Notes under the pieces: generated by a model
What the model saw: the letters and a program-made list of their open reading frames with translations, nothing else
Databases searched by the model: none
What the model was told of the DNA's origin: nothing
NCBI GenBank assembly: GCA_965202585.1
Contig: OZ241829.1
Span: 84,134,001 to 84,198,000, forward strand
Direction: 5' to 3'
Length of the DNA stretch: 64,000 nt
Origin: Thalia democratica
Lineage: Eukaryota
Program-made: the position numbers and the translations under genes
Shown here: piece after piece, positions 11,777 to 60,929 of the stretch
Layout of the letters: the number at the start of each line of letters is the position of its first letter
How positions within the stretch are numbered: the stretch's first letter is position 1

Positions 11777-14129
11777 GTCTAGTTAGTTATCTGAGTACGC
11801 TAAATATGCTTTGCATGCCTTTTCCTCATCATAAAAAACATCTTCTTTTCTTGAAAATAAGTTTTTGAAGCTATCCATACTGACATTTTCCAATGTTTTT
11901 GTTTTGTGACTCCATAAATGGTTTTTATTTTGCAAATTATTATATTCAACGTTTTTTTACAAAAAGTTTTTCAACGGAACTAAATGCACTGCGTCAACCT
12001 CTTTGTAGGCCTTGTGGCCTTTTTGTGTTATCTACTTTTTTTACTAAATTTTGTTGTCTCGAACATCATGTAGGATGTCGTAAAAAGAGTTAACAATCTT
12101 TCTTACAATTAACATTTGTTCGTAGTAACTTATATTTAACATATCACATACTTGTTTCTAATTGGTTCAAAAAATGTTTCATTGATCTATTTTATTTAAG
12201 TTGTTTAAGATATACGCTTCATTTTTTGATTTGGTCATCTTCATTTGTTGGTTGTTCTGAAAAAAAACTTAACTATAAAATAAAAATACCAAGACCAATA
12301 CTACATACATAATTTTCGTAATAATTTGCAACATTACAATTTTTCAAACTCTTTAATTTTGCGGCTTAACCATCATTCATTATTCCATTGCCGAAATCTT
12401 CATACAGCTTGGGAAATACTTAAAGAAGATCTCGTTGAGAGCTAACCTCAACAAAGTATAACAATGACAGTTTAAGTTTGTGAGTTAAGTAAGAAAGTGC
12501 TGCAATTTATTTCAAAGTTAAGCAGTTAAATTCTTATATTGAGATTTAAACAATAAGTTTCGAGAGAGCTTCACACTTCAGTAGCCTTAATGTAATAAAA
12601 CAAAACAAAAGTTCTATTGAATGTATTGCTTAACATATGTTTCTCGCTTACACGATGATCACAAGCAAATAAACTAACATTCTTAACCAATTCGACATTA
12701 CAAAAAATCTTTTTAATTTTTCAAGGAAAGAAAACTTACAAAACTTGAAATTTTCTTGGCCAGGTAATTAACTTGAAATTTTACATAACAATGTTTTAGT
12801 TTTTGAGTTCATTTAAAGTTCATTAGACTAGACTTCATTAGTTTAGAGAGATGCTCGAGCTATCTGTATTGGTTTATCATATTTTTTTTTGCAGATAAAC
12901 TGCTTCCAAGCATTGTGGAACTTCTTGCCAGGTTGTTATTCATACTTTTCTTTGCTTTTTTAATTTATTTAAAATATTTATAAGTGCTTAAACAAATCAA
13001 ACATTAAAACACTAAATAAAAGTTTAAACAATCAAAAAATACCATGCATTAAAATAAGAATTTTAAAACTTTTATATATTCTTTAAAGGTTTAAACAGGT
13101 TTTACTACAAATTGTAAACAAAACTTGAAGAAATCAGCAGGTACGTTAACAAAAAGTTTCGTTTTTGTTTTTTCGTTATCAATTGAAGCTTTAGCGGTGT
13201 TCACCGAAGTACTGTGATCTATTTTCAACAAATTGTTAGAAATTGCGGAGTGCAGAAAGACTTTTTATTATATTTGCTACTTTTTAAAATAACAAAGATT
13301 TCACTATCAAAACTTAATATTTAATTTTAAGTTAATTTATTACACTCTTCGTCGCCATAATGATCAAATTTAATCGTCTTGTTTTTTAACCATATGGCCT
13401 TGTATTTTAAAACAATGAGTTATCTAATATGAACTCAAATGTTATCGTCTCTAATACATTTTAACTGGTCATTTATTCAAACAAATTCAAATCAAATAAG
13501 CTAAAAGTGAACTGATTCCACCACTCAAATGCAATATATACATATAAGTAGTAATAGAAAAATATCATATTTTTTGATTTATTATACTGTTTTAAATTTA
13601 GATAAATTAGTTCTAAAAGATCCAGAAAAAAGTTATGAATTTCCAAATTGTTGATCAAAATTCAAATCCTTTATTTAAATCAAATATATTACATACAGTT
13701 TATTAAATTAACGAAACCAACGAACATTGTAATAACCTAATACAAATAAAACCTAAATGACTAATACTGGTAAATTAAAGACCAAAACTTGCAGGTAATC
13801 ATAGTATATTATAATCATTAGTTTAAACTTTGAAAAAAAAAATTGATAAATATTTTGTATAATACAAAACTCAACAAAAAACCTTAAGAGTTTTCGAAAA
13901 TAAAATTGCAAGTCAGTTAAATAAAACAATTGAGAAGATTATTTTTACGAGCAGATGTTACGTCTTACTTCATTTTTAAAGAGGTAGTTTTTAGATTTAT
14001 TTTGTTTTTAGAATTTTCAAAAAATTCAAATAAGTTTTCTTTATTTAATTTTTCTTTATCTAATTTAACCTCAAAAAGAGTTGATTAATCAAAATCTCAA
14101 TCAAACTGAAGTTCCCCACATAGTTCCCC

Positions 14130-36448: not shown

Positions 36449-39400
36449 GGTAAAACCAGCAAAAATGCTGCGAACAAATACAATTTAAAAGCTCAAGTTG
36501 AGAACGAAGTAAGCAGTTTGATATTTTACATTTGCCTAGAATGTTTTCGTTTTAACAGTTTGTGTTTATAACTTTTTAATTTTGTAGAATGGTGAAAAGA
36601 AAAAGCTTTTGCAAAGCATATCGGAAGCTGAATTAAAGCATGAGTTAGTTTTTTTAATACTTTAGTTTTAAATGCTTTAGTCGTTGGTAAGACGAAGAGT
36701 TTTAAATTGAAGTTAAAAAGAGTGTTAGATTAAAAGTTATAAATTGGAAAAAAAACTGTGATATACAAAATTTAAATACAAACCAATTTAAATGTATAAA
36801 CTGTGTTTTTTAATAGCTAAAATCAACTTTAATTTTTATTTACCGAATTAAAGTTTAAATATATAATACCTAATTAACCCGAATTCAAAAGTTATTTCTT
36901 AAATAAAATATCTAGTAAGTTTGATTACTTTAAGTTTTTTTTTAGTGTACTCAAATTGTTATTGTTTCAGAGATAAACAAGAAACTACTAAGGAAGAAAA
37001 GGAAAATCAAATGAACTTTTTGAACATGTAACTTTACAACTTCTAGTTCACCGAATATTAAAAAACGTCTTTTTTTACAAATGTTTTTATAAATGTATAA
37101 ACCACATTGGCTTTTAAAAAAAGACAAAATAATATTGGTCAAAATGAAAACTTTACTTTTAAATTTTTAATAGGAACCTCCAAAAGGCATTGGAAGCTAT
37201 CGACTCGTTGACATCACAAGTAGAAAGTCTCAACAAAAAAACTTCAACACTTGAAGAAAAAGTAAATATAGTTTATTAATTTACAGATCAATAAAAATTA
37301 AACTAAGTATGTAATAAAAATAGTTATTTATTTATTTTTGTTGAAACTTAAACAGTTGTAAAGCTTTCAAAAAAATTTAAAATTTTGATAAACATTTGTG
37401 CTTCTTTTTAAACCGTTGTAATAAATAAAAATTTTAAAATATTACAGTTGTTGAACCAAAATGTTGCTCATCAGACAGAAGTCACGAAAATAAATAGGTA
37501 AGTAGTTTACCTTATAAATCGTTTTAACTTGATTAATTTAAAAATAGTCAGTGTTTATTTTTTTGAAATATTTGAAAAATAAACTTAAGTATAATATATT
37601 ACAGGTGTTCTTGTGCTAAAACTTTATTCCGACTAACGGCGTTTCACTGCTCTCAAATAAATTTAAGAACAGATCTACGGAGTCTATAAAATGTTAACAC
37701 ACATTAGAAAAAAAGCAGAAAAAAGCATGTATAATTATGTATAGTGTTTATCTAGGTAGTAACTATAAATGGACTTTATGGTTTAAAAACAAAGTTTGGG
37801 ATAAAAGCGTAAAATTATAAAATTGTCTACAAAAAAAAAACAAATTTAATAAAAGTAGGCACCAACCTCAAAAAGCTCTAAGAATAGGCAGGTTTTAAAA
37901 ATGAAAATTAAATTGAGTTGTGCAGAAATGTTACGTCATAATAATTTTAACAAATTATTCAATAATTTATACAGCTTGAAAACATGAAGTATTAAACTTG
38001 CAAGAATATATAAGTTTTGTGAAATAAATTAGTACATAAATAGACAGAGTTATTTAAAGTAGAATCGTCGGTTATGGGGACAGATATTCGATAAATCTTG
38101 CCGCTTATTCAGAAGTAGGTCTTTATCTTCTGCTGCAATTACTGCTCTTTCTGTATTGCAAGTTGGGCAAATTCTACTTACTCCGTTGGATGTATGTTTT
38201 ATCTTTGAAACAATACTCCACTCCATGTTTGGCCTTTTACCGTACCTGTGAAAAAAACTCCAGACATAATCCGATAAACGCGTGCTTTGTTTTTTATTTA
38301 TATTTTTAAAAGTATGTTTATGATTAGCATATCTATCCTTGAAACTACCTGCTGTACTTCCGATATAAATTTTATCTGGGCCCTTACTTTCAACTTTAAC
38401 TTTATAAATTACATTTTTAATTAAGCAATTACCTTTTAATGGGCAGTTGTCTTTGTTTAATTTACGGCAATTACATGTTTTAGGCATATTACTTAACTTA
38501 TTACTATTAGTGTTAGTTGGTTTTGAATATTTATTTATAGATTTATTGTTATGCATTTTGCTTATACTTTTAGCGCTATTGTCGCTTACTTGTTCTAAGT
38601 TTTCTTTTATCATTTTAGAAATACTTCTAGTTATACGTTGATTATTATAATCTACACTATTGTTAGTACTATTGATATCGATATTTTCATTATCATTAAT
38701 ATTAAAGTTATCATTATAGCTTATATCTTTAATGTTTAAAGTTTTAATATGTTTTACATTATTGTTACCATAATTAAAATTTTTACTATTAGGATTATTA
38801 TTATTATTACTGTTATTAAAATTATTATTATTATTATTATTATTACTGTTATTATTAATTTGATTAGTATAATTAGAAATATTGTTCATATCTACGTTAT
38901 TACTAACTTTATTACTAGAGTTATTATTTGTATTAGCTTTGATATGTCTATTTTTAAAATTTGAAATTACTGTTTTATTGTGCGATTGTATTAAAGTTTT
39001 AACATTACTCATGCAACTATAAGAAATTAATATGTATATATTCTTGCAAGTTTAATACTTCATGTTTTCAAGCTGTATAAATTATTGAATAATTTGTTAA
39101 AATTATTATGACGTAACATTTCTGCACAACTCAATTTAATTTTCATTTTTAAAACCTGCCTATTCTTAGAGCTTTTTGAGGTTGGTGCCTACTTTTATTA
39201 AATTTGTTTTTTTTTTTTTGTAGACAATTTTATAATTTTACGCTTTTATCCCAAACTTTGTTTTTAAACCATAAAGTCCATTTATAGTTACTACCTAGAT
39301 AAACACTATACATAATTATACATGCTTTTTTCTGCTTTTTTTCTAATGTGTGTTAACATTTTATAGACTCCGTAGATCTGTTCTTAAATTTATTTGAGAG

Positions 39401-42400
39401 CAGTGAAACGCCGTTAGTCGGAATAAAGTTTTAGCACAAGAACACCTGTGATATACATTCCGATAAGCTTAGCTTATCAGGATCTCCAGGATTTAACGCC
39501 TTATAACGTTACACCGTATAATATATTAATAAGTTTGAATTAAATTTGTAGTTGAAGTGTACGCTTACAAATATGGTTATTATTTTTATACGTTATGAAT
39601 ACCTACATTTTCAAAAATCTAATAATTTAAGGCTCCACAAAGAAAAGTCTAACCTACTTATCAAAAAGATTAATGAAATTGAGCAAAACAACATGACGTT
39701 GTTAGATAAAGTTAGTTGTTAACTATAAAAATCATTAAAAAAATAAAATTTTATGCATATACTTTTATAAATATTTATACGTTACTTAATTTTATTCTTA
39801 AAAAAAATTTTGATATCTTTTTTTTTATACTCATTTTCGCTATTTTAAACTTTTACACTAATCAATATAGCAAAAAGTTTTGCAAAAAGAGATTAAAGAG
39901 ACTAATGAAAAAAGCGAAGCAATGAAGCTCCAAGTAAAACAACTGAACCTCGAAAACCAAGATCTAGCAAAAGAAGTTCAGAGCTGTCAGGAAGATCTCG
40001 AAGAAAAGGAAGATGCTCTTATTGCTGCTAAGAGCGCCACCCTTGAGTTGAGTGGTGAGTAAATGTTATTAATCGTAAATTAAATGTTTCTTAATAATCA
40101 ATAAAAGTATTAGAATACTTATAGACTATTTACTTTTTAATCCCTAATATTTTTTTTTAATTTTAATGTTTAGTAGTTACAAATATTGAAAAGACGAAAA
40201 CTATATTTATAAAGTGTTTTTTAAATTGGTTAAAAATCAATTGAAGCGTAATAAAACAACAAAAGTTGCTAATTTTAAGTTAACCTTTAGTCAAGCAGCT
40301 TTACAAGTCTAAATAGAAACTGCTTTTAAATATTTTTATTGTATATGATGCTTAACTTTATCATTTTGTACTTTTCAGAACAAGTTGGTCAATTAAAAGA
40401 CCAATTGTTGTCAGGAAACGAAGAAATAAAAGTTCTTTCAGACAAAAATGAAGCTGCTTTGAAAAACATTGAACAGATTAAAAATGATTTGACCAGCACT
40501 CAGTCGAAACTAGAGCAAGAAAAAGTAAGTTTGAAAAACTCTAAAAATTACAATTTCAAATACTTTTAAAACATAAAAATGTTTAATTTTTAATTTTTAA
40601 AATATATACTGTTTTTTATAGCTTATAAGGTAGAATAACTTATTTTGAGTGTTGATTTTTAACTTTTTTTTTCAAGTTGTAAATAAACAGCACTTTATTA
40701 AACTATTAAATAAGTTTAGATTAAAAAATTGTTTATTGATATTTTTATGACTTTTTTGTGTATTCAATTTCAGAACAACTCGAAAAATAATGATACTTAA
40801 GTTCAGATGTTTCTCATCCAAATGATTAATTTTAAAATTTTAAATTAAATACCGTTCCTTTTTTTTTAAAGAAGTATATATATTTTTTCTCATTATTAAA
40901 TTTTTTTATTGGTATTATCATTGACTCCATTTATTTACCAAACTTCACGTTTGCTCTATTTGTTTCTAAAACTACGAGCCTAACCTGTTTCCGAAATCAA
41001 ATATAAGTTAAATGATATTTATGCGTTCTATTTTTCTAAGATTAGCAATATTAACAATATTTTTATAAGGTTGTTAGTATAATTCATGCTTTTATGTTTA
41101 AATACAAGGAAATAATTAATTGTTAGCTTTTTTTTGTTTAAGATCTTTTTTTTTTTTTGTTTTTAGAACTTTTTGATATTTAAATGATTACAAAAATGTA
41201 TAAAAGTAATTGTTGCTTTTAAAACGGAAAATTTGATGCTTTATAAACTTTAAATAATAAATAATAAACTCACAAACATGAGACATTTCCTATAGAATAT
41301 AGAATTGTTTTTTAAATTTTTTTTAAATCTATACAAATGCAGATACAAGACGCATATTTTTCTTTTTTACATTTAGGTTGTAAGTTATCTAAATAACTTG
41401 ATCTGTAACTTTTTTTAAGATCGAGAGAAAAAATTTGCAATACAAGCTTGATAAAACTGAAAGTATTTGCAACAAAATGACAACTGAAATTTCGTCTTTT
41501 AAAGAGAAAATTAGCGTTTGCGCTAATGAAAAAGCCGAAATTAAAAAAGAGCTTCAAAAGGTAACTAATAAGGTAAGACATTTGCACATTTTTAAAATGT
41601 TTTCATCTATTTTATATTTTTAAAACTTTGTACACTCAGTTACAAACAATAGTAAAAAATTGTAACAAAGTGCAGTAGTTGACGTTAAAAAAACTTGTAA
41701 CTACTTTAAAAATAACTAATAAACATAATAAACTAACAATTTGCTTATTTTTAAAATAACAGCTGGAGATCCAAAAAGAAGAGCTTGTTACATCTCAGCA
41801 GGAAAATGAGAGGTTTTTTTAGTTATTAAAAAATAATTTTAAAAATTAATAGTTCTTGTTCAAAAGTCCATAGATATGTTTTTACTTAAGTAGCTTTTGT
41901 TTAGCATTGTTTTAAGGTTTGTGTTGAACTCGATAAAAGTCAACTAAGTAACAAGAGTAACGTTTTTGTAGTGTTAAGGCTTAAATCATTATGTACACTT
42001 TTAATAAACTATAAAAATTAATTTTATTAATAAAATATCAGATTGAAGAAAGATGAATATAATTTAAAAAAAGCAAATGACAGCTTAAAAACAGAGCTTA
42101 TTGAAGCTAAACGACAGCTAGTAAGTTGACATGTTTTATATACAAGTGTGAGGCCTAAAAAAAAATTCATATATATATATTGTCTTTTTTAAAAGACTTT
42201 TATCTTAACTTATATAGTATAAACAAACCAAATTAATTTTATAATTATTATAGGAAAAAATTAAAAGAGCTGGATTTTTCCGTGAGTTTTTAAAATATTG
42301 TCGTTTATGTTTTACAATATACAATTTCTTAACTTTACTCATTATTTGGATATTGATAATACTAAAAACTACTTATCATAATGTAACCATTCTATTTACT

Positions 42401-42769: not shown

Positions 42770-42783
42770 AAAGAGAAACAAAA

Positions 42784-43068
42784 ACGAAATAAGAAACGCA
42801 CAAAAAAAGTAACGAAATAAGAAACGCACAAAAAAAGTAACGAAATAAGAAACGCAAAAAAAAAGTAACGAAATAAGAAACGCAAAAAAAATGACGAAAT
42901 AAGAAACGCAAAAAAAAAAACGAAATAAGAAACCCATAAAAGGAACGAAATAAGAAATGCACAAAAGGAACGAAATAAGAAACTCATAAAAGGAACGAAA
43001 TAAGAAACCCATAAAAGGAACGAAATAAGAAACTCATGAATAAAACGAAATAATACACGCAATATAAA
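42784..43068 (+). repeat. Tandem array of 11 units (25-28 bp), core ACGAAATAAGAAA, starting 14 bp after the stop codon
   Basis: Units counted directly. Length falls from 28 to 25 bp along the array. AATAAA occurs at ~43039 and 43100. Confidence 0.95.
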
Positions 43069-45011
43069 ACCAAAAAAAAAAAGCAGAAAAGTATAACGCA
43101 ATAAATTACAAAAATAAATACAATTTTTTATTACTTGAAATATGTGAATACTTATCAAAACTATGCTCTTTTTATTAATACTAAATTACATCTAAACAGA
43201 ACTATTAAACTTTTAAAAACTTGAAGCTACTTAGTTATTAGTTATAAAATAAGCAAATTGTACCATGTTAAATAGCAGACTTGACTTGGTTTGATGAAAT
43301 ATACATACAAATTTTAATCAGTGAATTATTTAGCTATTTGTTTGCTAAGATATTATTTTTTGCAAGGCTTCCATTTTATAAATGTTTTTGTTTACCGTTT
43401 TATTATAGTTCATATCCAGTAATGACATCACTACAATGTTCTTAAAAAAGTAAGTTCTAATGCTCACTTCATAGAAAACCTCTAATTTTGATCTTATCTG
43501 ATTGTAAAAAAAGAGAGTAGAAGTTACACAATTTTACAAAAAGTTTTCAGGCATAATTCTAATGTTGTTGAACCTTTTGTACACTCAAGTCTAGATATAA
43601 TTACAATAAGGACATTATATTTTAATTTTTTGTATCAAAAGTTAATTTTCAGTGGTAATATACAAGCAGTTTAATAGTTTTACCGAATTAATTTGAGTTG
43701 GAACAAAGTAACTTTAAACTTTTGAAAGCAGTACTTTTCAGTTTACTTATTTTTTTACTTTTATACTTCACATTTATACCCTATTTCGTTATTTATGTAT
43801 ATAATGTTTCTGTCCAAGTTTACCAATTGAAGAGCTTAGAAATTCAGACTAATCTTTAAACATGGATCTGCTATAGAAATGTATTTATACAAGATAAGAC
43901 AACAGCTTTTTATCAACACAATTAATTTATTCTGTTCAGTTGTTGCTATTGATAAATTAACATATATTTTACCTTCATTTGGTTGTTAAATATATTTTAA
44001 CTAATAAATAGAAACGTACAAAATTCTATGGCCAATGAAATACATGGTTAATTAATTTTGACCTGCCAACTTCGATTTAAAGTTTGTTTCGAGTTTTTTA
44101 AACGTTTTCTAGACATTGGTGTTTAACATATAAATGTTCATGACCTTAAAAATAGCTTTTATGAAAATGCTGATACATTTGATCTGAGAACTTCATTATA
44201 ATTTAACATTGAGTCTATTTTGGATAATCAAAGCATATAAATAAATTTGGCAGAGTTAATTAAAGCATTTATTTTAATGTTGTAGTGTGTACATACTTTC
44301 AGATAACAACTAATAAGAAAGTATTATTTTTAAAGATGTGATAAATAAAAAAGAAATAACGACATTAAAAATTTAAATCATTAACTGCAAATAAAAACTG
44401 TATTAAATACTGCATACTATAATGAACATAACATCATATTATTTGAATAGCTCAACTACTACAGCCTAAAGTAACGAAAAAGACAAATCATGTATTGCAA
44501 AATAATAAAAGTACTATTTAGTAAAAAAGCACTTACACAATAGTGAATATTAAGCATAAAAATAATTCTAAAAAAACTGCTAAAAAATTGTAATTAATTA
44601 TAGCGTACTTACGTAAATAAATATTGATAAAAATACAATGCAAAAGCAGGTGTAATGATTAGAACAACTTGAAAGTTATTTTAATTACAGAAGGTACGAA
44701 AAAGCTACATACATAATAATTTAAGATCAGAATGTTTTTATGATTGAACTAAATAATATAATTTTGGTATTCAACTTCAATTATTTCAACCAATGTAAAG
44801 AAGTTCCGCTTGTTTATCTTGACTGTTTGTAAGGCATTAAATAATTATAAAAGTAAAAATACAATTTAACCTATTTTTGCTCGGTTAAAAAAAAGATTAT
44901 CTGATTAAAAGTTTGCTTTTACTGTTAATAAATAAAGCAAGAACTACATATAAAAACTTTCTCTAAGCTTGTGTTCGAGCTTTATAAAATTATTTTATTT
45001 CTAATAAACAG

Positions 45012-47328: not shown

Positions 47329-50300
47329 CAGCTGTTTTTTATTTCTATGCGAAACTCGAAATCTATTTTTAGATATATGTTAAACTAAAATTTCAAAACA
47401 CGGTAATTTTTAGTACTTTTTAAATATCTCATAAAACATAAAAAAAAATTTGAAAATAAATAAAAACGGATTGTAAATATTATCTGGACTTACAAACCTA
47501 TAATTATTTTATCCAAACATTTATTACTTTTTGAGATATGTTTAAGAATCTGAACAGTGTTATATATATATATATATAGTGATGTTAGAATATATATACA
47601 TTTTTTTTTCATATTTTGAGGTGTGACTTTTTAATATTTTTAAAGAACTATATGATACTACTAAAAATTTATTGTAAAAAGTTTTTAACTTTTACTATCT
47701 TGTGAGATTTAAGTTTGATGAAAAATACTATGACATATTTTGTTTTAATAAAAATCATTTAAATTTATTTTTTGATTACTCCTTTTCAGGGGCGTGTTTT
47801 GACTAGTTTCCTGTGAACCCCCTGAAAAAATAATTCTTAGAATATCACTAAAACGTTGTTTATTGACTTTGTTTTGGTTATATGATAAGTTTTGAATAAT
47901 GAATGTTGAATTTATAACACTGAAAGCTAAAAAAGTTGCAGTAACAAAAAATGCTCGTTTTTGCCCAGCTGAAATAGATTTTAAACAATTTTTAAATTGT
48001 TACGTCATAATAGGTAAAAGTTTTAAAGTAGCTTTTTTTTCTAGGAATCTTTTTACTAAGATGCTCTTAGTTCCCGTTATAAATTGTTATAGTGTAAATA
48101 ACTTTTGATTAAGTATGGTTTTTGAACTAGTAAGTACAATTTTACTTAAAAAATGTCCAATATAATCACTTAAGTTATATTTCGCGTACTTTATACTTTA
48201 ACGGTGGCAATTAAAGTTCTGAACTGAAATAAAATAAAAGGAGATTGATCAATAGTAAATTTTAAATTTTACTAAACAAAACAATGTTTTACTCGTTTGA
48301 AAACGAGATCTTCAGTTGTTTAAAATCTTATTCAAATATAAATAACTTTATTGTCCCTGGTGAAGGTTGCATGTGCGATCCCTAAATAGTTTATTATGTT
48401 TTGTATTTTTAACTCGTTTTATTGTAAGTGTTCGTAGTATTTAGATAATAAATTAGAAAAATTAAACCAAGGTTTCCTAACCTAGGATGTTCTTTGTGCA
48501 CCAGGTCCTAGGGCCAAGTATTTTAAGCGTCTTTTCGTTTAACAATTTATACATATATATATTATATCACTAAATGAAATTTTAAATTTTGCGTTAAAAC
48601 AAAATTAACAGAAACAAACGTAATGTAATAATTTTAATCAAAACTGTTTAAATAACAAAAAATCTTAGACAGAGCATAAAATTTTCTGAAAACAATTAAT
48701 AACAAAAACCTATTCAACTCTTCCATTTTATTTAACAAAGTTTTTGATTTTTATTATTTTTTACCAGTATTTTCTAACCCAGCATATTTAAAATATAAGT
48801 ATAAACTAGCTTATAGGTTTATCGAGTCACACACCATAGATACCTCTTAAAGTCTTGTCAAGGGCAAATCACTAAGTTTATTTAAGTTAGTTTAAGACTT
48901 ATAACTATTCTTATAATTGTATTTAATATATCATATTCGACAATAAAAATAAATAATGTTTAAGATTTCTTCCATTTCAAGTATAAAAAACTTATTATTA
49001 CTAAAGTCTAAGAACATAAAACAGTTATAAAGCTAATTTTTTTTGAATTCTAAGGATGCTTAAAAGTACTGATAAACTAATTTTTGTAGCTTTAACTTGT
49101 TCAGATAATTAGTTCAGGTAACAAAACCTATAAAGTGTAATAAAAAACTATAGTTTTATTTACACTTAAATTAAAACTTTAACAAAGTTTTTTTTTTGAA
49201 ATACATCACAGTAAACTCAACATCGTGAAAAATAAACTTTAATAGATTGGTTGTAGAGAAATAAACAATTACCCTTAAACTTAAAAAAAAAGATAGCTTA
49301 AAATTACACCAAATGGAGTTTTCATAAAATATTGTTTATTGAACGTTAAAAAAAAAACGCTCAGAAAGTTTAGTCTAACTACCTGGTGTAAAACAAACAT
49401 TCCGGTTATCAAGTATTAACAAGAAAATCACGTATTTTCTAAACGGGTCAGCTGCAGAAGTAAAAATTTTTTTCATTCATAATTCTATGCATGCTATTAG
49501 GTATTTATACAGCAGTATATAACCTTAAACTCCTATCCAAAATGTATTTTACACTCAAATATAAATCAAAACTGTTCTTTTAACCCACCTTGTCAAAGTA
49601 TGTAACAAAAATTAAATATTTCTTTACAAAAAATAAGATAAAAAGAAGTAAAATTATAGTCAATCAGAAGATCTTGCAGCTAACAGGTTTATTTTGTTAT
49701 ACAAACAACCTTACTGCTAAAACAGTTAAAGTAGCTAAACCGACACGACCCAAAAAATTTTAAAAACATTTGATATTTTTTTCTTATTGCGTGTTTTGAA
49801 TAGTTTATCATTTATTTTTATAGAAGAAATAGAGAAAAAAAGTTAGATAAACTTAAGAGACAAGACAAATTTGTTTATTAAAGCATAGATCAATTGTTAA
49901 TATTAACCATCCTTTATCGTTGCAAGTATTTATTTAAAATTGTTTTTAAGTAAACATTTTTGTTTGTTTGTTTTTTATAACAACCATTTTAGCTTTTTTC
50001 TGTAAATGATTCTTTATTACTTTATTAAATTTACAAACATAACCTGCCAAGCACAAGTTTCTAACCAAGACGTTAATTTTACAATTGGTATTTTTTTATG
50101 TGCTTTTTATTAGACTTTCAGTAAACTTAACTACTTATTAAATGATTTTTCATATATATTTTGATTTCTTTATTTTCAGACAAACTTTTCAGATTTTTGT
50201 TTGGCCTCAAAAAACTGGCCCATAACTAATAAAATATTTAATAATGATAATAAAATATAAATTTATTATTAAAAAATAATTGAGGTTTGAATATTTATAA

Positions 50301-57859: not shown

Positions 57860-58990
57860 ATTCTAACATATTTATATGAATATTAATTTATTCAATGGCA
57901 ACAAAGTTTCACCCAACAAAGATCTTCAGGCCTGCAAAATAAAAGATAAGACAATGAATAACTTATAATAAGTACAAAACAGTTTATATAATCATATTTA
58001 AAAAATTTACAAAAATCAGTACGTCACTTTAACATTGTTGTGCAAGTGAACAAAAAATAATTAAATAAACAAGTTTTAAAAGTAGAAATCTCTTAAGTGC
58101 AGACAAATATAAAATAGTTTTTGTCTTTTATTAAAATTTTGTTTTTTGTCAGCAAGTGATATCTCAATTTTTTCCAGGTTGCAGGTTTTACAGATCTTAC
58201 ATGCATTCTTTAAGTCTCTAATCTTATGCATTTAATTTTCCTTTTAAGTTCGTACCATTAAAATTTGTACCATTTAAGTTTATGTTGTATTTTAATTTCT
58301 ACATGTACTTAAAAAGTTATGTTCCTTTGTTATTTTTATTTCTTATGTCACTACTGTATGCGTACCATCTCTTTTTGTTAACCTGTGGATCCTATGTACT
58401 TCTTGGTTTCGTTCTGAGTAGTGATTATTGCATTGTATACCACATACTCCCACAAACACTTACTATTTTATGGGCTGGAATCTTTACTGCGGCAGTTGCA
58501 CATATTACTCTCATTATCTTTTCTTATTAATCATTTTACTTAGTACCTTTTTGTTGTGATGACTAATTAATGATTTAACATTTTCCATACAGCAGTACAA
58601 TACTTTGCACTTGTATCTGTTAATAATATTTTTTATGCTCTTCTTTTTAAAATTTTTATCAACTAGATCCAAGAACTTTTTTCCAATGTTAGTTTTAACT
58701 GATTGGCAGTATTTGAAGAACATAACTTTTCTTGAGAAAAAGTTGGGAATAACTGGTCTCATCTGATTGTCCGTTGTTGAATTTACTTCTAATATAAGTA
58801 TTAGACGCTTTTAGTCTTTCTAAAATATATTCTAATTGATTCTTTAAAACAATTGAGTTTTAAGTCACATTTTCAAAACTTTGTATTTCAAATATTAGTT
58901 TTCTGCAGATTAAATGCTTAAATGATTCTAAAAAGATTTTGAATTACAGCTTTATCAAAATTTAAAGCATACTAATGTAATATTGTTAAA
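57860..58990 (-). mobile_element. Decayed Naiad-type PLE (RT thumb/linker, GIY-YIG, 3' UTR)
   Basis: RKVMFF...VKTNIGKKFLDLVDKNF...CKVLYCCMENVKSLISHHNKKVL (58514-58762), then MCNCRSKD...CL..VVY....KKYIGSTG and C.TCNLEK with stops and frameshifts. Confidence 0.8.
57885..57945 (-). ncRNA. Minimal type I hammerhead ribozyme, canonical core
   Basis: GGC-CUGAAGA-U(short stem II)U-GAA-AC UUU GU-U-GCC, with a UUUAUU/AAUAAA extension. It lies in the 3' UTR of the Naiad remnant, the expected position. Confidence 0.7.
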
Positions 58991-60929
58991 TCACTAATGC
59001 ACAACTTTAAAGTTGTTGTCAAAGTTGTTTTAAACAAAACTTTGCAAATTCAACTTTGACTCCTCTCTTGACCAGCAAAAATTTTATTTATGTATGATAT
59101 TTTTTAATGTATATACACATAAAGCAGATAGCTAAAGAATGTTGAGAGAATTTCATAAACATATCTATTATAAAATTTTTGTTTTTTTTTTCAAACATTA
59201 TTTTCTTATGCCTAAAAAATGTCGTTTTTAAACTCTCCTCTTTTTGAAGGAGTACATGTTTTTACTTCTTTTTTGTATTTTTTTGTAAAAACGATAAAAA
59301 TCATCTTGAAACTTAAAAAAACTCTTTAAAATAAGATCAACTTGTAAAAAACATGGCTAAACCCCCCTCCCCTATGGCCTTAACATCACATATATTTTTA
59401 TAGCAAACTCTAAAATTTTTTTCATCAAGGCACAAATTTCTTCTTATTTTAGGTTTTAACTCTTTTGGTGCTAAATGTAAATAGAGGAATTTAGTTAGGT
59501 TACTACCTTTTTTGAGCTCGTTCTCCCATTTTGTTTTACCTCAATGTCTAATCCTAGACCACTCTCTGATGTCTTTTCCGATTTAGGCCTAAATACTCTA
59601 CCAAAATGACCATCTTTTGTGAGTAAAAACTCTTTCAAGGACTGATATAATTTATTCTTCCACTCAGTTATAGCCTAATAGTTTTTGATGTCTTTTGTAG
59701 GCCATACTGCCGTTAATATTTTGTAGTTGTCATTTAGGTTGTGAATGTCGTTAACCTTATATGACTTCCATTCATGTTTCCATGAAGAACTTGCTGCAAG
59801 GCTAGCCTGAATTCCGTCTGACGTTTGTTTTTCTTAAGATATTTACCCAACTGGATTTCAAAGATTTTCTTCTTCCTAATTTTATTTAATAAACTCTTGT
59901 TGTTTGTAACTGAGGAATCGCGTTCATGTCTTTTAGTATGAGAATGAGTTTTCAAGATGCTATGTTTTGGAAGAACCTCTATTTTGCATCACTTGCAATA
60001 TGCTTTTGTACTATTGAGTTGGAGCAATCCAGTATATAAAGTAAAACAATTCTACACATATTTGACTTAACACTTTTTACTAATAACACCTTAAACATAC
60101 TAAAAACAACTGAGCATAAAATCAGTTGTTCTTTTTATAATTATAACGCTTGAATTTAAGTTAAATAACTAAAATAAATACTTAACTTTTATTCCAAAAA
60201 TGTGTTATAATAAACAAAAACAAACAATTTAGTTAACGTAATCATTACATACGTACACTTGAAATGCATATTTTAAATAGTTTTTGTGTTTTTACAAGCT
60301 CATTTCAGGGTTGCCAATATGTTAATCTAAAAAAAAACGTCCCTGAGTAACTAACTTAAACTGTCATGATTCACTACTGAAATTTATTTAGGCAGCTAAA
60401 TTGAAACTTTTCCAGACCTGGAATTAAATTATTTTATAAAGTTTAAGAAAAGGTAAATTCTATAATGGTATAATTCAACGAATCTAAATTGATCCAGAGA
60501 GCATCCTTCAATTTGCATAAATTATCTGATTACTTATACTGAGTTTGGGCAGTGACATCATTCAACCTATTGATAAACAAGGTTTTTGTTGCTCAACATT
60601 TTCTGATAATCCAAAAATGCAAATAGCATTACACATCAAAGCTTTCTAGAAACAAAGGAACAAGTAGCTGAATATAACATTTTTTCTTTTCTATTGAGAT
60701 TTAAACAATAAATTTCTAGAGAGCTTCACACTTGAGTAGCCTTTATGCAATTAAGACAAAAGTTATATTGAGTTTATTACTTAACAATTGTTTCACGCTA
60801 AAGCGATGGTCACAAGTAAACAAACTAACAAGTTGCAATAGACAAACACTTTATATTTTGAGAACATTATAAGAACATAGAAAATTCATAGTAATCATAG
60901 AACATAGTAAATTCGTTATTGCCACTTTC

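Follow-up and report, generated by a model that had tools for sequence, protein, structure and literature searches.

A hammerhead-like motif with a C4/U6 core in a Penelope-like element of Thalia democratica and in related elements

We analyzed a 64,000-nt stretch of the Thalia democratica genome (OZ241829.1:84,134,001-84,198,000; 28% GC; genome of 0.8 Gb), hereafter the window, in which a truncated Penelope-like element (PLE) carries two copies of a 54-nt motif with the layout of a type I hammerhead ribozyme. In place of the hammerhead 5' core consensus, C3-U4-G5-A6-N7-G8-A9, the motif reads CCGUAGA and so differs at position 4 (C) and position 6 (U). Descent of the motif from a hammerhead is close to certain. 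We favor, with some reserve, the reading that it is a lineage-specific hammerhead module of Hydra-clade PLEs in which C4/U6 has been kept by selection and which is likely attenuated, protein assisted, or structural.

The motif and its copies in the genome

Parsing with our own hammerhead descriptor, together with the other evidence given in parentheses, divides the motif and its surroundings as follows.

39366-39419, plus strand: the hammerhead-like motif that is the main subject here, 54 nt, type I layout (sequence read, exact match, and descriptor parse).
37631-37684, minus strand: an identical 54-nt hammerhead-like motif, sense to the open reading frame (ORF) and beginning ~366 nt past its stop codon (exact match and descriptor parse).
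39366-39369 with 39416-39419, plus strand: stem I, GACU/AGUC, 4 bp (parse).
39370-39376, plus strand: 5' core strand CCGUAGA, that is, C3 C4 G5 U6 A7 G8 A9 (sequence read).
39377 opposite 39404, plus strand: unpaired U opposite U, flanking stem II (parse).
39378-39403, plus strand: stem II hairpin, 11 bp including 2 G.U pairs (arms 39378-39388 with 39393-39403), loop UUUA (parse and fold).
39405-39407, plus strand: GAA, that is, G12-A13-A14 (parse).
39408-39414, plus strand: helix III, ACGCCGU (parse).
39415, plus strand: U17, with the predicted scissile bond between 39415 and 39416 (cleavage site placed by hammerhead rules).
39462-39478, plus strand: a second conserved hairpin, stem GAUAAGC/GCUUAUC, just past the end point of the minus-strand copy of the element (by eye from printed sequences).

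The parse yields a three-helix junction with an open stem I, a hairpin stem II, and a short helix III. On the 3' side (39405-39415), the core has G12-A13-A14, the A15.1-U16.1 pair, and a base other than G at position 17 (U17). The G10.1-C11.1 pair that would close stem II is replaced by U.U. With relaxed stem requirements (stem II of at least 8 bp and stem I of at least 4 bp), the descriptor returned two matches in the window, at 39366-39419 and 37631-37684, and none in 30 dinucleotide shuffles. The 54-nt string has an exact reverse-complement twin in the window, where 0 matches are expected from shuffles. ViennaRNA placed stem II in both the minimum free energy (MFE) and the centroid fold (z = -2.25 versus shuffles). 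An earlier note on this DNA had assigned type I geometry to the motif, and the parse, shuffles, and fold bear this out. It had also given stem II 12 bp, of which 11 are paired and the twelfth is the U.U mismatch counted as a pair. Homodimers modeled with RNAcofold mostly had stem II swapped between strands and are uninformative on helix III.

The CCGUAGA core is the state of the family. When 26 surrounding bases were required and the seven core bases were left free (N7 pattern), 1,915 places in the T. democratica genome matched (control, 0). Among the 100 first-listed matches, 89 read CCGTAGA and the remainder are scattered changes; the exact 33-mer with CCGTAGA occurs 876 times. The earlier note had raised the question of whether CCGUAGA is the family consensus, which these counts answer in the affirmative, and had named family copies with CUGANGA, together with a lack of cleavage, as what would overturn its reading. 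CTGANGA in the same 26-base context has 0 occurrences in this genome, and the reading is not refuted. A private mutation of the window copy was rejected on the same grounds. CTGTAGA, present in 4 of the 100 first-listed copies, fits C-to-T decay at CpG and not an ancestral U4.

Core and stem variation among related elements

The 881-aa ORF of the full-length element has more than 1,000 homologs, mostly on ~3-kb marine metagenome contigs, and the DNA around homologous ORFs was scanned with our descriptor. In thirteen relatives at 38 to 55% amino acid identity, a motif with a canonical core (CUGAUGA, CUGAAGA, or CUGACGA) occupies the same position and shares the layout, in which stem II is flanked on both sides by an unpaired or mismatched base (frequently U with U) and helix III has the form A-palindrome-U. 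The U.U flank of stem II is a trait of the whole PLE clade; relatives also have A.A or C.A, and several with canonical cores likewise lack G10.1-C11.1. The motif starts ~195 nt upstream of the ATG in the window family (contig L031 of the same genome), ~180 nt upstream in L033, and ~330 nt upstream in L034, and the canonical motif starts ~160 nt upstream in L036 and ~350 nt upstream in L080, which are homologous positions. The shared position and architecture indicate that the window motif is homologous to PLE hammerheads, in keeping with the earlier note, which had recognized a hammerhead motif in a young PLE copy. Contigs L065 and L066 (90%-identity relatives), L067, L068, L079, L081, and L082 end before the motif and add no lineage.

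Other lineages share the departures from the consensus. The marine metagenome contig L034 (63% identity, full-length alignment) has the core CCGUUGA (motif at L034:1125-1175), and L033, also from a marine metagenome (69% identity, full-length alignment), has UCGUCAA (motif at L033:116-164). With the L034 motif as the query, an older family was found in the T. democratica genome (L069-L078); its core is CCGUUGA, and in its subfamily L076-L078 the core is CAGUUGA. Position 6 is always U in the variant lineages, and position 4 is C except for the A of this subfamily, which suggests that position 4 is free in the older-family lineage and that U6 is not. N7 is A, U, or C. In L033, the C3-G8 pair has become U3-A8, keeping the pair, and G5, A9, GAA, A15.1-U16.1, and a non-G base at position 17 are kept in every variant lineage that was parsed. 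Core positions do mutate in decayed members of the older family, three of which have UAA at G12, indicating that the core is not a mutational cold spot. The stems show compensatory changes within the variant clade, both in stem I (U-A/C-G, C-G/G-C, A-U/G-C/G.U) and in the first pair of stem II (C-G, G-C, or U-A). No alignment outside the motif was obtained by blastn of tails from different lineages.

An IQ-TREE phylogeny of 15 ORFs placed all variant-core elements in one clade with support of 100/100. The sister of this clade is the canonical L036, and cores are canonical everywhere else on the tree; canonical L080 (43% identity by full-length alignment, 51% by BLASTP) is not among the 15 ORFs. 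As read from these sequences, the C4/U6 change arose once, on the stem of the variant clade. The variant core persisted through branch lengths of 0.2 to 0.4 substitutions per amino acid site, and the ORFs of the variant lineages differ by 25 to 37% in amino acids yet keep the motif. The argument for selection comes from these other lineages. The two arms of the window element and the ~1,900 near-identical copies stem from one recent master and say nothing about it; the earlier note had cautioned that arm identity alone proves no selection, and we agree. Judged by the divergent lineages, maintenance of the variant core by selection appears very probable.

Several further observations concern the structure of these tails. 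Stem I of L076 is compensated, with ACC/GGU in place of GCU/AGU. The distal half of the long stem II with its loop and an 11-mer immediately upstream of the motif (window 39349-39403) resemble a separate tail hairpin at L034:4020-4060 and L079:1828-1880; in the L034/L079 lineage this tail hairpin is separate and the hammerhead lies elsewhere. Stem II of the window family may be chimeric, a hairpin captured into the ribozyme. The MFE folds of the window family and L033 pair C4-G5-U6 with A15.1-C15.2-G15.3, and this pairing was considered as a conserved alternative helix and not adopted; L034 and the older family lack the third of its pairs. L033 and L067 have GAUUAGC/GCUAAUC as the stem of the second hairpin, where an A-U pair of the window is replaced by U-A, and a twin of the window hairpin lies on the minus strand near L031:3936-3952. 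The boundary that we take as the start of reverse transcription falls between the hammerhead motif and this hairpin (39462-39478).

Two covariance models, R1 from 6 canonical sequences and R2 from 22, detected numerous canonical motifs, both in the window and in the loci fetched around homologous ORFs. When 23 motifs were aligned with MAFFT, the variant core was misplaced relative to the canonical ones; the pair counts from that alignment are invalid and were not used.

The host element and nearby repeats

The insertion that carries the two motifs comprises the following features.

37589-37601, no strand: left target-site duplication (TSD), a 13-nt TA-rich word (same 13-mer at 39516-39528).
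39516-39528, no strand: right TSD, a 13-nt TA-rich word (same 13-mer at 37589-37601).
37602-39034, minus strand: 5'-truncated PLE copy, an ORF remnant plus a ~450-nt 3' tail (inverted-repeat arms, ORF, and comparison with the full unit in L031).
38050-39012, minus strand: 320-aa ORF remnant, an Asn-rich linker and a GIY-YIG-type endonuclease (EN), the C-terminal third of the 881-aa reverse transcriptase (RT)-EN ORF (its YIGST...R..H segment aligns to the GIY-YIG match of homolog P0010).
39035-39515, plus strand: inverted partial copy containing tail, motif, and the start of the 5' region of the next unit (98.6% match to the full unit up to ~39522).

As is standard for PLE insertions, the window copy consists of an element that lacks its 5' part and is joined to a partial copy in inverted orientation. 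Its arms form a 99-100% inverted repeat (37595-38012 with 39035-39455), within which the two motifs match exactly, and the 13-nt word is intact at both ends, as the earlier note had described. The intact ORF that it had also described is only the C-terminal part of a longer one: the window ORF begins at an internal Met of the family's 881-aa ORF and covers its final 320 residues. Full-length units stand in tandem in the T. democratica genome, 3,203 bp apart, with an 881-aa ORF (L031:4034-6679). The plus-strand fragment extends ~60 nt farther into the unit than the minus-strand copy does, which fits the "tail" signature of PLEs. The pseudo-long terminal repeat (pLTR), tail, and TSD organization is thus seen in the tandem units, the inverted fragment, the one-sided extension of ~60 nt, and the 13-bp TSD.

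In the full-length unit, a single ORF encodes an RT followed by a C-terminal GIY-YIG EN. The C-terminal region aligns to P0010 across the Pfam GIY-YIG match of P0010 (26.2 bits); Pfam gave no match on the protein of the element itself, and a PDB sequence search with the EN region returned noise only. By our own reading against PMC8557442, the 881-aa ORF has a YRDDG-type RT core, DKT (not DKG), RWR, a Cys-rich linker, and CxxC/CxH around a conserved E and N; the linker spacing, CxC-x7-C-x5-C, is slightly unlike the published CxCX5C. These motif marks and the TA-rich target would place the element in the Hydra clade of C-terminal-EN PLEs. Members of that clade (Craig et al. 2021, PMC8557442) likewise have DKT for DKG, the RWK-like motif to which RWR corresponds, the Cys-rich linker, CxxC/CxH around E/N, a TA-rich target, and aquatic invertebrate hosts. 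The window family differs in its 3.2-kb unit with a long Asn-rich linker insert. Canonical hammerheads are reported as universal in the Hydra clade, whereas the core of the variant subclade is non-canonical. The Asn-rich insert is of low complexity and lies between the RT and the endonuclease linker (residues ~580-735 of the L031:4034-6679 ORF); its length varies among close relatives (874-882 aa), and it is absent in 700-aa relatives.

Other hammerheads occur in the window and beside PLE insertions. At 60777-60819 and 12626-12668, both on the minus strand, are type I hammerheads with a G3-C8 swap (GUGACCA, GUGAUCA), a 6-bp stem I, a palindromic helix III (ACAAUUGU, ACAUAUGU), and similar flanks. 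These flanks and shared features indicate a second family with a non-canonical core in this genome; the C3/G8 swap is the one double mutant known to keep activity. At 48274-48320 (minus strand), a canonical CUGAAGA core with U.U flanks and a 7-bp stem II scores 28.9 bits with R1 and has G12 changed to A (UAAAAC); it is probably a dead copy. At 57894-57932 (minus strand), a CUGAAGA core with stems of only 3 bp (R1, 18 bits; E 0.07) is a decayed hammerhead of another family. The earlier note had cited this locus, at 57897-57932, as a relative whose U-U pair and GUU site supported the register of the window motif. It was right about a decayed CUGAAGA hammerhead, but this is not a copy of the CCGUAGA family, and the locus gives weak support for the register. 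A canonical hammerhead (CUGAUGA, U.U, 10-bp stem II, ACAUAUGU) lies at L031:963-1019, 48 nt outside a full-length PLE insertion, and recurs at L071:2526-2585; it seems that PLEs in this genome insert next to older repeats that bear hammerheads. An unrelated A-rich minisatellite occupies 42776-43087, at a distance of ~3 kb from the element, with ~12 repeats of 25-28 nt each (AACGAAATAAGAAAC-type).

Cleavage, rival explanations, and meaning

Hammerheads in PLEs have been described before, as have U3-A8, the U.U mismatch, and the U4C and A6C variants, each on its own. The motif resembles the minimal type I hammerheads of metazoan PLEs (PMC4209133) in its pLTR/tail location, 4-bp stem I, long stem II, extra base at the 5' end of stem II, GAAA strand, H17, and short palindromic helix III implying dimers. 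The group also shows U3-A8 covariation, and its single motifs and inverted pairs are likewise scattered in the genome. The variant differs in C4/U6 rather than U4/A6, in a first stem II position that is U.U, A.A, or C.A rather than G10.1-C11.1, and in the extra C of helix III in the window family. Metazoan PLE hammerheads were reported to have hardly any activity, dimers included (Cervera & de la Pena 2014, PMC4209133). Natural variants affect the same core positions and have low but usable activity: U4C in a viroid is weak in vitro and sufficient in vivo, and A6C in phage Bcep176 has detectable low activity (k below 0.1 per min). Among mismatches, U10.1-U11.1 is tolerated best (all in Perreault et al. 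2011, PMC3088659). Those core changes are single, in contrast to the combination of U4C with A6U that is fixed here throughout a diversified clade of retroelements. Neither A6U nor U4C with A6U was found described in the literature searched, which did not cover Lunse et al. 2017 or the supplements of Craig et al. 2021.

U4 and A6 build the uridine turn, and Mg-only self-cleavage of the window motif is therefore probably strongly reduced. When all single and double hammerhead mutants were measured, mutants of the CUGA turn had low activity except for the C3/G8 swap (Roberts et al. 2023, PMC9901934), which predicts low self-cleavage for the C4/U6 core as well. Strong attenuation or loss of unaided cleavage is, on this literature, probable. 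A precedent for an assisted or non-catalytic role is the Poseidon PAc hammerhead of Anolis (PMC11167929), which lies near the reverse-transcription start, as the window motif would. In that 2024 Mobile DNA study, it cleaved only with the protein of the element, and catalytic mutants inserted normally in vitro. PAc differs in having a canonical core, in overlapping the start codon, and in belonging to another PLE clade. Naiad and Chlamys PLEs (PMC8557442) are also highly successful without canonical hammerheads; they have an N-terminal EN and lack the motif or have only core strings, whereas the window family retains the whole fold with two core changes.

In the reading that we favor, the ancestor of one PLE subclade would have changed U4 to C and A6 to U, and the C4/U6 form would then have been kept by selection as the elements diversified, with the window family reaching ~1,900 tail copies. 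The RNA would still adopt the three-way-junction fold of a hammerhead, with helix III formed between the two strands of a dimer or as 2 bp closed by a triloop. The motif lies ~30 nt upstream of the end of the minus-strand copy, which we take to be the start of reverse transcription on the template, and its most likely role would be that of a weak ribozyme assisted by protein, or else of a part of the PLE RNA that serves structure or RT binding.

Several points weigh against this reading. The sample holds only ~4 variant lineages, two of which are each represented by one metagenome contig, and the U3-A8 swap is a single event. Helix III of the window family is an imperfect palindrome with an extra C, whereas helix III of L033 and L034 is perfectly palindromic. 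Rfam scans (window, 14 kb, full unit, and 111 nt) gave no hammerhead match at the gathering threshold or, on the 111 nt, at E<=10, a null that is uninformative because minimal PLE hammerheads are atypical. On the variant motifs, R1 and R2 scored L034 at 11.5 bits (E ~1) in the expected register and did not report the window family at E<=10; they also miss canonical L080 and are too narrow for a membership test. Finally, if catalysis has been lost, it is less easy to see why G5, G12, and the C3-G8 pair remain under constraint, and this favors an active variant. On that account, C4/U6 would be a fully competent alternative active site that self-cleaves in vivo after U17 (39415), as a dimer and/or with the aid of a protein, and so processes PLE transcripts. 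Every catalytic or structural core position other than 4 and 6 is kept, with N7 the sole freely varying one, and the pair preserved by the U3-A8 swap is one that exists in the active conformation only. With 1,915 copies, the family is highly successful; the natural U4C and A6C variants work or are detectably active, and PLE hammerheads, whose activity in vitro is low in any case, can be protein assisted (PMC4209133, PMC11167929). We nevertheless regard this account as unlikely. The comprehensive double-mutant data show no rescue within the CUGA turn (PMC9901934), the A at position 4 in L076-L078 makes that position look unconstrained rather than specifically C, and marine and fish-gut metatranscriptome contigs of 715 nt and 299 nt run uncut through the predicted site, although contigs cannot show RNA ends, nor do they establish transcription. 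The corresponding proposal that YCGUNRA is a second naturally selected hammerhead active-site solution, with the uridine turn U4-G5-A6 replaced by C4-G5-U6 and cleaving in vivo as a dimer and/or with the PLE protein, would be similarly doubtful.

Neutral persistence offers a different explanation, in which the motif is a dead hammerhead relic hitchhiking in the tail and the likeness among lineages reflects recent common descent only. Both window arms and the ~1,900 near-identical copies do derive from one recent master, and the success of Naiad and Chlamys shows that PLEs can thrive without hammerheads. This explanation is improbable given that lineages separated by 25 to 37% amino acid divergence, with tails that cannot be aligned, have retained the motif, its stems changing by compensation and its core staying the same, and that truly neutral old copies show core decay. 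Still less credible, and close to dismissible, is a chance hairpin that resembles a hammerhead and is unrelated to ribozymes. Such a hairpin would account for the lack of an Rfam match and for a core that departs at 2 of 6 specified positions, but in sister elements canonical hammerheads occupy the same place with respect to the ORF and share the architecture of the motif, and the relaxed descriptor found no shuffled matches of such strength.

The variant lineage provides a natural experiment on the role of hammerheads in PLEs, where they are near-universal, cleave poorly in vitro, and are dispensable for insertion in one tested element. A diversified and very successful PLE lineage keeps the whole fold and nearly all of the core, yet it has fixed two uridine-turn changes that laboratory scans scored as crippling. 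If the motif does not cleave, the fold would be kept for another job, such as RT binding or template organization near the start of reverse transcription, and PLEs could spread in nature with no need of catalysis. Should the motif cleave, the hammerhead consensus now accepted would be too narrow, and descriptor-based searches would be missing a class of ribozymes.

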